The notes beneath the pieces are model-generated. The model was not told the DNA's origin. It made no database searches and saw only the letters and a program-made list of their open reading frames with translations. Below, one piece after another: positions 13,201 to 19,200 of a DNA stretch of 64,000 nt. Source of the DNA: Anolis carolinensis (taxonomy: Eukaryota); contig NC_085841.1 of the NCBI RefSeq assembly GCF_035594765.1, forward strand, positions 310,381,402 through 310,445,401, read 5' to 3'. How positions within the stretch are numbered: position 1 is the first letter of the stretch; the number at the start of each line of letters is the position of its first letter. The translations under genes and the position numbers were made by a program.

Positions 13201-16200
13201 ATGTGGACAATTTTGGGAGTATTTCAGATTTTGGGATTTCAGGTAAGGGATGTTCAACCTGTAGTAATACTACTTCATGATAAATTCTGCATAAATTAAT
13301 TGTCCATATTAGTACAAAGTTCCTACCTGCCTTTTTTGGTGGCCTGAAGCTCCAGATCTCATGAGGTCTTGGGTAACGTTGCTCAAGATGTAAGTAATAT
13401 TCATAATTATTATCCATAACTAAACGATCCTTCTTGTCTTGATGGACAATCCTGGCTGATCCTGAATGCACTCAGGAATAGGAGGAAATTAGGTTGGTAA
13501 TCTACTTCATAGTTTGTTATAGGAAGATGAAATTAAATGTAAATTAATAATAAGGAAAAAAATTCCAAGTATTTCCTAACATTTTAATTAGATTCAGTTA
13601 TGTATGCTGTTTTAGGTGTGCCTTATAGAGAAGAATCCCTTGGAAGGGTGGGGGGAAAATATACAGAGTATTCACAAGTAATTAAGATGCAGTTATAGTC
13701 AGACCTACAGCTCTTACAACATTATCATACTCCCACATTCACAACATTTGCTATATTTTAGTTGATCTTTCTGCTTGCTAATCCTGAGTCTTAATTATGC
13801 CAACAAAAGGATTTATAGATATTCCTGTTCCACCTACCAAAGTAGAGGTCTTGTTCAAAGATATTTTGTGTAGTATATGAGTATTTTCCAACCACAGAGT
13901 TCAATCTTCCTCGACGTTTAACAGGAGATAATGGTTTGAAGCTCTTCTTTGATACTCTATCTGCTGTTTTGTTGTTAGCAGATGGGTCATCTATGGCAAG
14001 CACTCTTGTGTGGAAAGATGGTCCTCTGGGAGATAGGAAACATTATTTCATTTATGATACCCGTAGAGCTGGAAAGAGAACAAGCAATGCTTAGAGCATT
14101 ATGAAAATTGTTATCAAGCAGAATTAATGGCTGTTATTTGTCACGTAAGGTGGTCATCCAGCAAAATTGTAAACTCTTGAAACAGATACCTGAGAACCTG
14201 GGCAGGATCCTGCTTGAGATTCAAGTTGCAATTGGAGCAAAGACTATCCATTCCAGCAGACTTGAAGGTAGAACTCATCAGTTTCTAGCAAGTCTAAGAG
14301 ACCCTCTCAACACAAAAGGTGTTGATTAGTGTTGCTCCAAACAAAATCATAGTAGCTTCCTCCTAGTAAACTGAGGTGTGAAGAGGAGTATTCTCATATC
14401 ATAACTAATTTACTGAAGTACTTCCTTCTGTAAACTGCTCCAGATTTCTATTCTTGTATTTTAATCTGTTCTATAAGCACTGAACATATAGCTAAATCAC
14501 AGCATGTTTCTGGCTGTATCCATATTGAACAATTATCACAGTCTGATACCACATTAACTGTCTTCATGCCATCCTAGTGAACCTAGAATTCTGTGTTAGA
14601 GAGACCTAGTACACTCCTCTGAAATGCAACATTATGGTTCTTTGGCAGAGAATGTGGCATATCTCACAAAATGCAAAATGAGGCTGAGGTTTGGGTTAAA
14701 CAGAAGGAAGCACTTTTTAAAACACTGCTTAATGAAAACATGGGATGCTTTTCCACAAGACAGTTATGGCTTTCTTATGAACCACTTCAAAAGAGGATTT
14801 GGCAAATTAATGGAGGATACAGCTATTTGTAGCTACTAGTCAGGATGGTTATATGCTACAGCCAGAATTAGATAACACTGGTCTGACCTATTAGTCTCTT
14901 TTTACAATCCGCATTCTATATAAAATAGCAGCCAATAGTAACCTCAGTGTGGCTGAACCTTAATAGGAAAATGGTTATCATAAATCAGTTAGCAATGTAA
15001 ATACATTATCTACAACCCTAAACAGACATTCACCAATTTATGGGTAGTATTATACTAGGGGCAAGGAAGTGAGCATACATGTAGCAGACAAAAGAATTCT
15101 CCGACTGAGTTCAACTGATTTTTTGTGTGTAAGTTACAGAGTCTAATGTCAGGCTCACTTCAAAGGACCAGTCTGAACGTAGATCAAAGATAGCTGCTCT
15201 CAAATCCAATCTTTATTGAAGAATACATGACTTTGGAAAAGTCGAGAATGACCTAATGTTTACATACATCCATTTTTATCACCTCTGATGCAACGTAACA
15301 CCACACGCAAATATCATCATCAAACCCCACCCTCTGGATCACATTACTACTATTCCCACACACTATACCAATTATAATTGTTTATACTTTCAACCCTGAG
15401 TTCCCAGGCTCATACTATCTTCTCCCGCCAGGTGCTTTCAGGGTTATTTATGTTATGACGCCAGGTCCAGGGCTCGGAAATTCAGCCCTGGGATCTGGCT
15501 CCATGACATGGCGCCCTCGTTTTCTTCATCCTCCTCTTCGGTTCTTCTTTCATCACAATCCTGAAATAAATCAGACAATAACTCTATGTGTCCATTTTGT
15601 CCAAAGTCCCCATATACTTTTTCAGTAAGTTGCGATGGAATACTGGGTGTATTTTCCCTAAACTCTTTGGCAATGCCAACTGGAAAGTTACTTCATTGAT
15701 AACACCCTGTATTCTGAATGGTCCAATATATTTGGGGCCCAATTTTCTCGAAGGTAGCCCCAATTTGATGTTTTGGGTACTTAACCACACTAGATCTCCT
15801 TTCCCTAATTTATCGCCTTCCACTCTTTTTCTGTCTGCGAACGTTTTATACTTTTTATGTGCCTCCTTTAAGGATGCAGTCACTTGACTCCAGCATTCTA
15901 GCATTTGAGCTTTCCATTTCCCTGCCCCTGTTTCTTCATCCTCTGTCCATCTTGGCAACTGGGGCAAAGGCTGTATTTCATACCCGTAAACTACTTCAAA
16001 GGGAGTTTTATTTGTTGCTGAATGTATAGTCGAATTAAAAGCTAGTTCCGCAAAAGCCAGCCACCTAGACCAGTCATTTTGTCTCATGTTAGAGTACATT
16101 CGAAGGAACTGCCCCAGTGTCTGTTGAGTACGTTCTACTGCCCCGTTTGTCATGGGGTGAAAAGCAGAACTTAGACTCCTTTCTGCTCCTAGCATTTCCA

Positions 16201-19200
16201 AGAATTTTTCCCAAAATTTTGCTGTGAATTGAACTCCTCTGTCACTGACCACTCTACTGGGACATCCATGAAGTTTGTAAATATGGTTTATGTATAATTC
16301 AGCTAGTTTCTCTGCCGATGGTAATTTCGTCAGTGCTATAAAGTGGGCCTGTTTAGAAAACAGGTCTAATACTGTCCAAATATAACGATGTCCTTTGCTA
16401 ACCGGCAGTTCCCCCACAAAATCCATAGCTACACATTCCCAAGGTCTGGTAGGTTCCGCTACTGTTTGTAATAATCCCATTGGCTTCCCTCCTCTCGATT
16501 TATTTCTGGCACAATCGTCACATTGAACAACATGATTCTTTATGTCCTTTCTCATTCCTGGCCACCAACAATGTTTTGCTATTGCCTTTGTTGTTTTTGT
16601 AATTCCTGTATGACCAGCGCTCTGGTTATTGTGAAAACGATGCAAAATCTTAATCCTTAATATTGCTGGGATATACAGTTTCTTGTTCACAAACCAAAAT
16701 CCCCCCTTCTGCTCCCCCTTTTCTGCGTTGGATGCGATCCACTGATCTCCTTCATAAGACTGTTTCAGTTCTTTTCCCCAACTATTTTCCCCGTCGATTA
16801 CAACAATAGCAGTGTTCTCTTTCTGGGTTTGCGCTCTTGTCCTGACAACTAAGCCCCATTGTTTATCAGAGAATATTGTTCCCTCTTTGGCTGTGGTTAC
16901 GCCTTCGTGTTGAGGCATGCGTGAAAGAGCATCTGCCAAGACATTCTGCTTCCCTTGGAAAAATTTTAATTGGAAATCGAACCTGCTGAAGTATTGTGCC
17001 CATCTAATTTGTTTGGGGGACAATTTCCGAGGCGATTTTAAATACTGGAGGTTCTTATGGTCAGACCAAATTTCAAATGGGATTCCGCTTCCTTCGAGGA
17101 AGTGTCGCCAGCATTCTAAGGCTTTTAATATGGCTAATGCCTCCTTTTCCCATATGGGCCAACATTTTTCAGTTTCACTGAACTTCCGGGACAAATATCC
17201 ACAAGGTTTTAAGTTCCCATTTTGATCCTTTTGCAATAGTACTGCCCCGTATGCACAGTCTGAAGCGTCGCAATGAATTATGAAAGGGCTCCTTATATCG
17301 GGGTGTTTTAGGATGGGTTCTTTTGTGAAGCATCCTTTTAGGGTTTCAAATGCCTTTTGGCATTCTGGTGTCCAACTCAGTTTGGCGCCAGGAGCTTTCA
17401 CTTTTGCTGTCTCCCCTTTCCCTTTTGTTTTTAAAAGTTCAGTAAGGGGTGCGGTTATTTGCGCGAAGCCTTTTATGAAGGATCTATAAAAATTTGCAAA
17501 CCCCAGAAATGATTGCAATTGCCTCCTAGTTTGAGGTACTCCCCATTCTTTTACGTCTGATACTTTAGACGGATCCATAGCTAACCCTTCTGGAGATATC
17601 CGATACCCCAGAAAGTCAATTTGAGTTTTATTAAATTCACATTTGGACAGTTTTGCGTACAGCTTTGCTTCCCTTAGTCTCTGCAAAACTTCCCGGACCA
17701 ATTCCACGTGCTTTTCTTTATCTTCGCTCACGATCAAGATATCATCAAGGAATATGAATACCCCTCGGTACAACAATGGGTGTAGTATTTCATTTATAAG
17801 CTGCATAAAGCAACCGCCGCCATTTTTTAATCCAAATGGCAAAATTTTATATTCAAAATGGCCGAATGCGCAGGAAAATGCAGTTTTCCAAGTATCCTCA
17901 GGTTTGATTCTTAATTTATGATATGCTTCAATTAAATCAAGTTTAGTAAATATGCTCCCTTTCTTCAATACGGTGATCAAATCCTTTACTAAGGGCATAG
18001 GGTATTTATTGTCCTTAGTAATTGCATTTAAATTTCGATAATCAATGCACAATCTTAGGGAGTTGTCTTTCTTTCTCCTAAATAACACTGGGGCTCCGAG
18101 AGGAGAATTGGATGGCTTAATGAAGCCTCGCGCCAGGTTCTTATCGATATATTTCCTCAATTCCTCCTTCTCCTGGACAGACATGGGATACACTTTTGGT
18201 TTTGGTAAGTTTGCTCCTGGGGTTATTTCAATTTCTACTTCTATATTCCTCTTGGGAGGTAATTTACTTGCCTCTTTCTGATTGAAAACATCCACAAAGT
18301 CTCTGTATTCAGGTGGCAATAGCTGTGGGTCTATTTCACCTGCTTCATCTCCCTCGTCCTCCTCTCCTGCAATTTTGCTTATCTCCCATTGCGTCTGTTG
18401 TTCTTTAAATGCTAGGCTCTTTCCTCTCCAATCTACTTCAGGATTTGCCTGTTCGAGCCACGGTATCCCTAATATTACGTGGTATGTGGCGATAGGGGCT
18501 ATCACAAAGGATATTCTTCCTTCCCATTTGCCTATTTTACATGGGACCCCCCGTATTTCCTTTGTAGATACTTCCCCAGCCGCAACTGATCCATCTAGCT
18601 GCGAAAATGCAATTGGGGAGTCAAGCAACATCTGCTGGCATTTCAGCGCTCCTGCTAGTTCCGGAGTTATAATGTTCCTAGAACAACCACAATCCACGAA
18701 TGCCCTGCAGGTGGCCCGGTTCTCTAGCCCCGATAGGCAAATTGGCACTACTAGCATGCGTTTGTCTTGACTCACCAGCCTTTCCGAAGATTTTGGGGCT
18801 TGCACCTCCTCCTCCGCACGCCTCCCGGTTGCTGGCTTGGGCTTTGAGGGTTTTGGCGGCTCCCCCTTCCGGGCCCAACATTCTGCTGCTCGATGGCCCG
18901 TCTTCCCACATACAAAGCATCCCGGTTTGGGTTTGTTGTCATCTCCTCTGAAGGGGATCCCCGGCCTCCCTCCGGGCTTTTCTTGCTTCCTCATTTCTCC
19001 TCGACCTCTCGCCACCGGTCTTTGCTGGCCGCCGCTGCCCCTGAAGCGCTTTACTTGGGCCAGGGTGGATTCAACGCGCCCCGCTAGTTGGATCCAGCCC
19101 TGGAGTGTTTCGGGGTCATCTCTGTGCGCTGCCCAGCTAAAAACCTCGGGGCGTAGTCCCTCTTTAAATATCTCCACTTTGGTCACTTCAGACCACTCTG

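Follow-up and report, generated by a model that had tools for sequence, protein, structure and literature searches.

Splice sites that would remove all of pol from a single-ORF Ty3/gypsy element of Anolis carolinensis and its squamate relatives

Genomic Features of the Element

The sequence analysed here, called the window, is a 64,000-nt stretch of the Anolis carolinensis genome (NC_085841.1, positions 310,381,402 to 310,445,401, forward strand; assembly GCF_035594765.1). Its minus strand carries a complete long terminal repeat (LTR) retrotransposon of 5660 bp (20804..15145) of the Ty3/gypsy type (Metaviridae), in which a single predicted splice would remove the whole of pol and leave a Gag-only messenger. 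The two LTRs are 364 bp each (20804-20441 and 15508-15145) and have the termini TGTCA...TGACA. Pairwise alignment showed that 362 of the 364 positions are identical (99.45%, 2 differences). The LTR pair was also found by BLAST, which detected no second copy of the element within the 64-kb window. The features of the element are as follows (a slash marks an exon boundary).

20805..20810, minus strand: 5′ copy of the target-site duplication, TTAGAC; the same hexamer follows the 3′ LTR, and the length is 4–6 bp according to the choice of LTR end
20441..20804, minus strand: 5′ LTR, 364 bp (LTR alignment, BLAST, direct reading)
20576-20568, minus strand: TATA-like GATAAAAAT in the 5′ LTR (direct reading)
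near 20545, minus strand: putative transcription start in the 5′ LTR, placed by its distance from the TATA-like box and by the self-priming complementarity
20513-20508, minus strand: AATAAA in the 5′ LTR (direct reading)
20429..20439, minus strand: putative self-priming (Tf1-like) primer-binding site (PBS) AAGTCGAGAAT, complementary to ATTCTCGACTT in the LTRs at 20545-20535 and 15249-15239 (3′ LTR)
18776..20389, minus strand: coding exon 1, Gag of 538 codons with a capsid-like domain and one CCHC zinc knuckle (open reading frame, Pfam; equals residues 1-538 of XP_062824184.1)
18770..18778, minus strand: predicted 5′ splice site CTG/GTGAGT, GT at 18775-18774 (direct reading; rank 1 of 228 GTs)
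15561..18775, minus strand: predicted intron of 3215 nt, the whole of pol (protease, reverse transcriptase, RNase H, integrase; stop TAG 15586-15584) and a 23-nt spacer (sequence reading, Pfam, exon structure of the RefSeq model)
15561..15581, minus strand: predicted 3′ splice site with an interrupted pyrimidine tract, TTATTGTCTGATTTATTTCAG (direct reading; best AG 3′ of the donor)
15453..15560, minus strand: predicted coding exon 2, a 35-codon tail of net charge -8 and the stop TAA 15455-15453; it spans the polypurine tract and runs 56 nt into the 3′ LTR
15509..15550, minus strand: purine-rich tract directly 5′ of the 3′ LTR, also Glu/Asp-rich coding sequence; by its position, the putative plus-strand primer
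15145..15508, minus strand: 3′ LTR, 364 bp, with AATAAA at 15217-15212 (LTR alignment, BLAST, direct reading)
15146-15141, minus strand: 3′ target-site duplication TTAGAC, after the 3′ LTR (direct reading)

Gag and pol form one open reading frame (ORF) on the minus strand, which runs from ATG 20389-20387 to TAG 15586-15584 and has 1601 codons and zero internal stops. This bears out the preliminary description of the locus, which had reported a single gag-pol ORF without a frameshift or stop. Pfam sequence profiles matched Retrotrans_gag (5.6e-11), Ty3_capsid (1.1e-7) and zf-CCHC (2.5e-4) in the Gag part. The pol part matched gag-asp_proteas (residues 19-109), RVT_1 (234-393), RT_RNaseH (493-599), Integrase_H2C2 (702-761), rve (776-874) and SH3_Tf2-1 (993-1054). 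The order of protease, reverse transcriptase, RNase H and integrase matches Ty3/gypsy. The LTRs with TG...CA ends, the target-site duplication, the polypurine tract and the Ty3-type capsid profile with its CCHC knuckle agree with this order. As judged from its sequence, the element is a Ty3/gypsy element (Metaviridae) in every feature tested, and it is apparently autonomous and recently inserted.

No tRNA-type PBS is present after the 5′ LTR, and 11 nt complementary to a segment of the LTR occupy this site. The PBS/LTR complementarity of 11 nt starts approximately 23 nt after the TATA-like box, which is the sequence arrangement of Tf1/sushi self-priming. A comparison of the window element with three other loci (L003, L012 and L016) showed compensatory PBS/LTR changes across three anole families (AAGTCGAGAAT/ATTCTCGACTT, AAGTCAGGAAT/ATTCCTGACTT and AAGCCGGAATT/AATTCCGGCTT). 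One snake element has a 10-nt PBS/LTR match. The putative self-priming PBS fits the Tf1/sushi group, in line with the earlier label "vertebrate sushi-like element". The window element gave no Pfam chromodomain match at E<=0.01, and its ORF ends 9 residues after SH3_Tf2-1. Because no chromodomain was detected, the element is not filed under the chromoviruses. A relative in Pantherophis guttatus (P0246) has a chromodomain-like polyprotein C-terminus (...YLIKWKGY...W), whereas none is seen at window positions 15587-15700. A Rfam scan of the whole window yielded no family above threshold, and hence no known RNA element for export or frameshifting.

Predicted Splicing Event and Its Product

The last exon base before the donor CTG/GTGAGT is 18776. 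The coding sequence up to this base is 1614 nt, or 538 codons, which places the donor in phase 0. If the RNA is left unspliced, the donor bases are translated as Leu-Val-Ser, where Gag meets protease. The acceptor is TTATTGTCTGATTTATTTCAG/G, and the exon behind it begins at 15560, 23 nt past the pol stop. Splicing from 18776 to 15560 would remove 3215 nt, that is, all of pol. The reading frame from 15560 stays open for 35 codons and closes at TAA 15455-15453, which corresponds to positions 54-56 of the 3′ LTR, in U3. The tail residues Ala-Met-Ser cross the LTR start (GCC A/TG TCA). The positions and phase that the preliminary description gave for the donor and the acceptor hold. Its 35-residue tail ending in the 3′ LTR, with the polypurine tract doubling as coding sequence, also agrees with the sequence.

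The product expected from the splice, with 538 aa of Gag and a 35-aa tail, is identical at every residue to the RefSeq protein XP_062824184.1 (P0079; LOC134295465, 573 aa). The comparison was made exon by exon, exon 1 being window 20389-18776 and exon 2 being 15560-15456. The locus of this protein is 100% identical to window 23389..12453 (rAnoCar3.1, CM069367.1, near 310.39-310.40 Mb). The spliced product is already present as an automatic NCBI annotation. A search with the Gag exon returned dozens of A. carolinensis RefSeq "uncharacterized proteins" of 566-578 aa, consisting of Gag and a very similar tail. The clusters that hold such models contain >130 member proteins in A. carolinensis RefSeq; their members were read in part, the representatives and members read end in the tail, and some members are truncated. 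The gene models come from NCBI Gnomon and from one submitter pipeline (Crotalus adamanteus). The exon structures were established by locating, in the DNA of 19 fetched loci, the GT-AG pair that reproduces each database protein.

One further model bears on the acceptor. P0095 (LOC103280470, 139 aa) is unrelated to the element in its N-terminal part and ends in the identical 35 residues that form the tail of the window element. It was the sole match to a junction-spanning piece of the 573-aa protein (P0079:470-573), its gene range is 127 kb, and it is known from the protein model. This model seems to represent a host transcript spliced into the same acceptor of another element copy. Since it ends in the exact tail, the acceptor is, at the level of the gene model, also used from a foreign donor. 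The copy concerned appears to act as a terminal-exon trap, with its acceptor and LTR poly(A) signal.

Conservation of the Layout in Anoles and Snakes

The same layout is common to five anole groups (two species) and four snake species. At each of the anole loci fetched (13/13), the element is full-length and the gene model has two exons joined in phase 0 at GT-AG sites; the introns measure 3192-3228 nt. Snake relatives were reached by a profile-free search with cluster representatives, at a Gag identity of approximately 26-31%. The sites are as follows.

Window element and L001 (~95% DNA identity): donor CTG or TTG, then /GTGAGTC; acceptor TTTCAG/G or TTTCAG/A
566-aa group (L003-L007): donor TTG/GTGAGTCGG; acceptor TTATTGTTTTGTTTCAG/G
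529-aa family, 62% Gag identity (L008-L011): donor TTG/GTAAGTCAG; acceptor TTTAATCTTTTCCTTCCAG/G
Anolis sagrei family, ~54% (L012-L013): donor TTG/GTGAGTCAA; acceptor GTTCCGTTTCCCTTTCAG/G
Pantherophis guttatus: donor ATG/GTGAGTGGA; acceptor ...CCCTATGGGATAG/G; tail VMSQK
Ahaetulla prasina: donor ATG/GTAGGTGCA; acceptor ...TTTTCTTTCCTAG/G; tail of 17 aa
Crotalus adamanteus: donor ATG/GTGAGTCAA; acceptor ...TTTGTTTCCTTACAG/G; tail DLSFL; submitter pipeline model

At the Crotalus tigris locus, the model takes the same donor and a far-off acceptor. The element itself has TGTCTCTGTTTCATTTCAG/G between the pol stop and the LTR, an unannotated acceptor in phase 0 with the predicted tail GALW. A second C. 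tigris RefSeq protein (P0247), found later, ends in ...EDPM-GALW, as predicted from the sequence alone.

In the intact relatives (L001, L003, L008, L012 and L017), gag and pol lie in one ORF with no frameshift or stop. The reading frame closes 35, 35, 27, 13, 23, 5, 4, 5 and 17 codons past the junction in the nine lineages. Both sites persist in every related copy and family examined, snakes (~44% Gag-Pol identity) included. The loss of donor or acceptor in related copies, which the preliminary description had named as a refutation, is thus not seen. Together with the identical RefSeq model, this supports the earlier proposal that splicing removes pol and gives a Gag-only product. Other relatives either have a separate gag ORF that stops directly behind a Gly-Asn motif resembling the PEG10 slippery site, or have overlapping ORFs; none of these appeared as a spliced model. 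A gecko relative with a contiguous gag ORF (L015) was considered as a processed copy and rejected, as it is a degraded or frameshift-type locus.

Strength of the Sites and Probable Selection on Nucleotides

The splice sites were scored with approximate weight matrices, and only the ranks were used. The window donor ranked 1st of 228 GTs (10.5 bits, the next 7.6), and the window acceptor was the best AG 3′ of the donor. In the five anole groups, the donor ranked 1-2 of ~220 GTs and the acceptor 1-5 of ~480 AGs. The donor is always 27-34 codons upstream of the catalytic Asp of the protease.

Such motifs might exist for other reasons and be joined by gene predictors, with no splicing at a meaningful level. 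Leu/Met-Val-Ser would then be a protein need at the Gag/protease boundary, and the T-rich run would be a retroviral-type "U-box" before the polypurine tract. Retroviruses have T-rich boxes upstream of their polypurine tracts, Val-Ser is conserved at the protein level, and the junction had no match among the run-assembly proteins searched. Codon usage argues against this explanation. Eight of nine lineages have a phase-0 G/GTRAGT, with the codons NNG/GTR AGT. Among four divergent lineages, Gag-Pol identity between families is 43-65%, and codons are identical at only 31-38% of the conserved residues, so synonymous sites are near saturation. AGT makes up 10-23% of the Ser codons in these ORFs, and the product of its frequencies over these four lineages is approximately 5e-4. 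That GTR AGT and the preceding G are kept despite near-saturated synonymous sites indicates selection at the nucleotide level, beyond the Leu/Met-Val-Ser peptide. In the ninth lineage, Ahaetulla, the donor reads GTAGGT; Ser is changed to Gly, yet the GT and the +5 G remain.

The acceptors lie in non-coding spacers that are unalignable between families. Each retains a pyrimidine tract of 15-22 nt together with YAG/G, which is more than a T-run, and each lies between the pol stop and the polypurine tract or 3′ LTR. Two different annotation pipelines agree on the splice, and the host gene model P0095 uses the same acceptor. We consider it improbable that the splice is an annotation artefact.

The position of the acceptor raises another explanation. 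The sites may be left over from a subgenomic RNA that once served a 3′ gene, since lost, after the model of retroviral env splicing or of splicing to CERV in the Caenorhabditis elegans element Cer1, and may persist without a present role in Gag supply. An acceptor right after pol is in an env-like position. However, no 3′ ORF is left, and only 22-52 nt separate the acceptor from the LTR in anoles. Unused sites should also decay across such divergent families, and yet they are the strongest in each element. This origin seems very improbable to us.

A Probable Gag-Only Messenger and Its Possible Role in Gag:Pol Balance

The sites, their phase, strength and conservation, and their use in gene models suggest that this gag-pol element probably makes two mRNAs from one LTR promoter, and that splicing yields a Gag-only RNA, as in copia. 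Transcription would start approximately 23 nt after the TATA-like box of the 5′ LTR, near 20545, and the transcript would end past the AATAAA of the 3′ LTR. The unspliced RNA of ~5.4 kb would serve as genome and as Gag-Pol messenger. In a fraction of the RNA, the strong donor at the end of Gag (18776/18775) would be joined to the weaker acceptor (15561/15560), 23 nt past the pol stop. A strong donor with an interrupted, weaker pyrimidine tract is the retroviral arrangement for partial splicing. The spliced RNA of ~2.1 kb (~1.77 kb + ~0.37 kb) would encode Gag alone, with 35 further codons translated over the polypurine tract as far as U3. As its stop codon is in the last exon, this RNA should escape nonsense-mediated decay. 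It would provide more capsid than enzymes, an excess that related elements obtain by frameshifting. From the sequence we infer the existence of the spliced RNA in vivo and the splice ratio. By analogy with copia, BARE1 and EVD, its purpose may be the Gag:Pol balance (PMC3735527, PMC5580714).

Several points weigh against such a two-messenger mechanism. No Logan run-assembly protein with the junction was found with the Gag exon, P0079:470-573 or a rattlesnake Gag (P0113) as queries; the one relative from Logan (L014) has overlapping ORFs and is of the frameshift type. Gene models of >100 near-identical copies may share multi-mapping reads and are not independent evidence. The NCBI pipeline drops models with strong transposon matches, which could enrich the Gag-only isoform in RefSeq. 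Since Gag-length gene models were the route to the families, any that lack the splice are under-sampled. The length and charge of the tail are not conserved outside anoles. The preliminary description had also proposed a search for genomic copies without exactly this intron, as retrotransposed spliced RNA would leave; none was present among the 19 loci fetched, which is neutral or mildly unfavourable. The intron is there in all 13 anole loci and in the snake loci that have spliced models.

Predicted Acidic Tail of the Anole Gag

The anole tails are 35, 27, 23 or 13 aa long. The distance from acceptor to LTR in the five anole groups is 52, 52, 52, 22 and 25 nt, all 1 mod 3. At this distance the frame read is the acidic one (net charge -6 to -8); the other two frames would be basic (+4 to +6) or stop at once. 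Snake tails have 4-17 residues and are roughly neutral, and in snakes an acidic run (...EDKGEDDPM, ...NDEGENDPM) lies upstream of the donor. The "distinct capsid isoform" of the preliminary description is weak as a general claim, given the varying anole lengths and the short, non-acidic snake tails. An acidic Gag C-terminus seems to be general by sequence, and the version encoded by the polypurine tract seems anole-specific.

A real splice could also have a different main product, namely a regulatory, tail-bearing Gag that modulates assembly or RNA binding, or that acts as a copy-number-control or dominant-negative factor. The tail charge of -6 to -8 stands beside the basic zinc-knuckle region, and each of the five anole groups has the 1 mod 3 distance that holds the tail in the acidic GAR frame. 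An acidic Gag end, encoded elsewhere, is found in snake and frameshift-type relatives as well. On the other side, the length (4-35 aa) and sequence of the tail vary freely, and its acidic part is forced by the polypurine tract. The shared phase in three independent lineages is approximately a 1-in-9 event, a weak argument for selection on the tail, and the suggested function is a proposal from sequence. We give a regulatory main product only a slim chance.

The simplest view is that the acidic anole tail may be the polypurine tract read in the GAR frame, a by-product. It may also substitute for the acidic Gag C-terminus that snakes encode before the donor. We speculate further that pol removal by splicing may be the ancestral Gag:Pol control of a squamate single-ORF, PEG10-related gypsy clade, convergent with copia, and at the same time that the anole tail may be a selected acidic module that tunes nucleocapsid or RNA binding or brakes copy number. 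This combined proposal is rather unlikely as a whole. If it were true, one 50-nt stretch would be plus-strand primer, 3′ exon and protein domain.

Comparison with Known Retroelements

In Drosophila copia, splicing removes ~2.95 kb of pol to give a Gag RNA (PMC3735527), and EVD and other Ty1/copia elements likewise splice to a Gag RNA (PMC5580714). The closest functional match to the predicted anole splice is copia, followed by the plant Ty1/copia shGAG RNAs. The 2-kb RNA of copia resembles the predicted anole RNA in its single gag-pol ORF, in the ~3-kb intron deleting virtually all of pol and in being dedicated to Gag (PMC3735527, PMC5580714). Copia differs in belonging to the Ty1/copia superfamily (Pseudoviridae), with integrase before reverse transcriptase, and in its insect host. 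The anole acceptor, unlike that of copia, lies past the pol stop, and the tail would be read over the polypurine tract and U3.

The plant shGAG RNAs (EVD/COPIA93, BARE1) also arise by alternative splicing near the end of gag, at sites conserved between families, and are subgenomic messengers for Gag alone (PMC5580714, PMC3735527). The plant introns are short, that of BARE1 measuring 104 nt and that of EVD being centred on the protease, and their splicing is linked with premature polyadenylation. The anole splice would take out all of pol, and the normal LTR poly(A) signal would serve. A genome-wide Arabidopsis study showed no conserved splicing in Ty3/gypsy (PMC5580714).

Splicing is known in gypsy-type elements from env RNAs, Ogre, CRR and the CERV of Cer1 (PMC3735527, PMC10309623). 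No report of a Gag-only RNA in gypsy-type elements, and no description of Gag-only splicing in vertebrate Ty3/gypsy, was found in the literature searched (full text, limited collection). Cer1 of C. elegans, of Ty3/gypsy type, shares a single-ORF gag-pol and a genomic RNA with working splice sites. CERV, however, is an accessory protein encoded by five exons, a Rev-like export factor that contains only short peptides of Gag, whereas the anole splice would keep the whole Gag and involve no accessory ORF.

Tf1 of Schizosaccharomyces pombe and the vertebrate Tf1/sushi elements share the single gag-pol ORF and the 11-nt self-priming PBS (self-priming in Tf1/sushi: PMC6317226). The route to Gag excess in single-ORF Ty3/gypsy elements is known for very few cases, of which Tf1 is the textbook one. 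The Gag excess of Tf1 is said to come from protein degradation and not from splicing. Post-translational degradation has been mentioned as a route (PMC3735527).

PEG10 and frameshift-type sushi-like elements have a homologous Gag (Pfam PEG10_N-capsid / Ty3_capsid), and RefSeq names one A. sagrei copy "PEG10". PEG10 makes Gag and Gag-protease through a -1 frameshift, whereas the window element has no frameshift. Gypsy-15_Ano, the anole proxy for the PEG10 ancestor, is also without a frameshift (PMC11011659).

Splicing to a Gag-only RNA has so far been regarded as a Ty1/copia hallmark. If the proposed splicing is real, this strategy would have arisen independently in the lineage that gave the PEG10/RTL-type host genes, and it would explain the missing frameshift in the anole proxy of the PEG10 ancestor (PMC11011659). 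It would also offer a directly testable vertebrate system with young, intact copies. Well over a hundred squamate RefSeq "uncharacterized protein" entries would represent this Gag isoform. The acceptor and poly(A) signal of the element could also capture host transcripts, as the model LOC103280470 suggests.

Further Gene Models and Other Sequences in the Window

The window element lies inside an intron of a gene for a HEAT-repeat protein (1032-aa product), in the same orientation (L002, ~12453-23389, minus strand). Since it is intronic and in this orientation, its acceptor and poly(A) signal could truncate the host transcript. The RefSeq protein P0052 (XP_062818535.1, 565 aa) is named "replication protein A 32 kDa subunit isoform X2" and consists almost wholly of Gag and tail of the 566-aa subfamily; the name is probably a mis-attribution from an intronic element copy. 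P0020 (UniProt R4GAB6, 713 aa, from an older A. carolinensis assembly) reads through Gag and protease and then has an end encoded by the polypurine tract and LTR (...EEEVGERGGAMSWGQFPELSLQ...). It may stem from a non-autonomous copy with an internal deletion, or else represent a second splice form with an acceptor close by.

Two long plus-strand ORFs antisense to gag (18837-19580 and 19596-20276) are probably by-products of the GC-rich gag. Upstream of the element, a 309-aa ORF (21495-22424, minus strand) had no Pfam match, and a sequence like a short interspersed element lies at ~21200-21350, just upstream of the element. A short interspersed repeat occurs in three copies, ~84-85% alike and in both orientations (22964-23280, 25973-26239 and 46899-47218). 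A run of 131 N (39447-39577) is an assembly gap or a masked stretch. The plus-strand ORFs 31738-32397 (Bile_Hydr_Trans, 5.9e-35) and 36462-37238 (BAAT_C, 3.7e-75) resemble the N- and C-terminal halves of an acyl-CoA thioesterase/BAAT-like protein, and the pair probably represents two exons of a single host gene.

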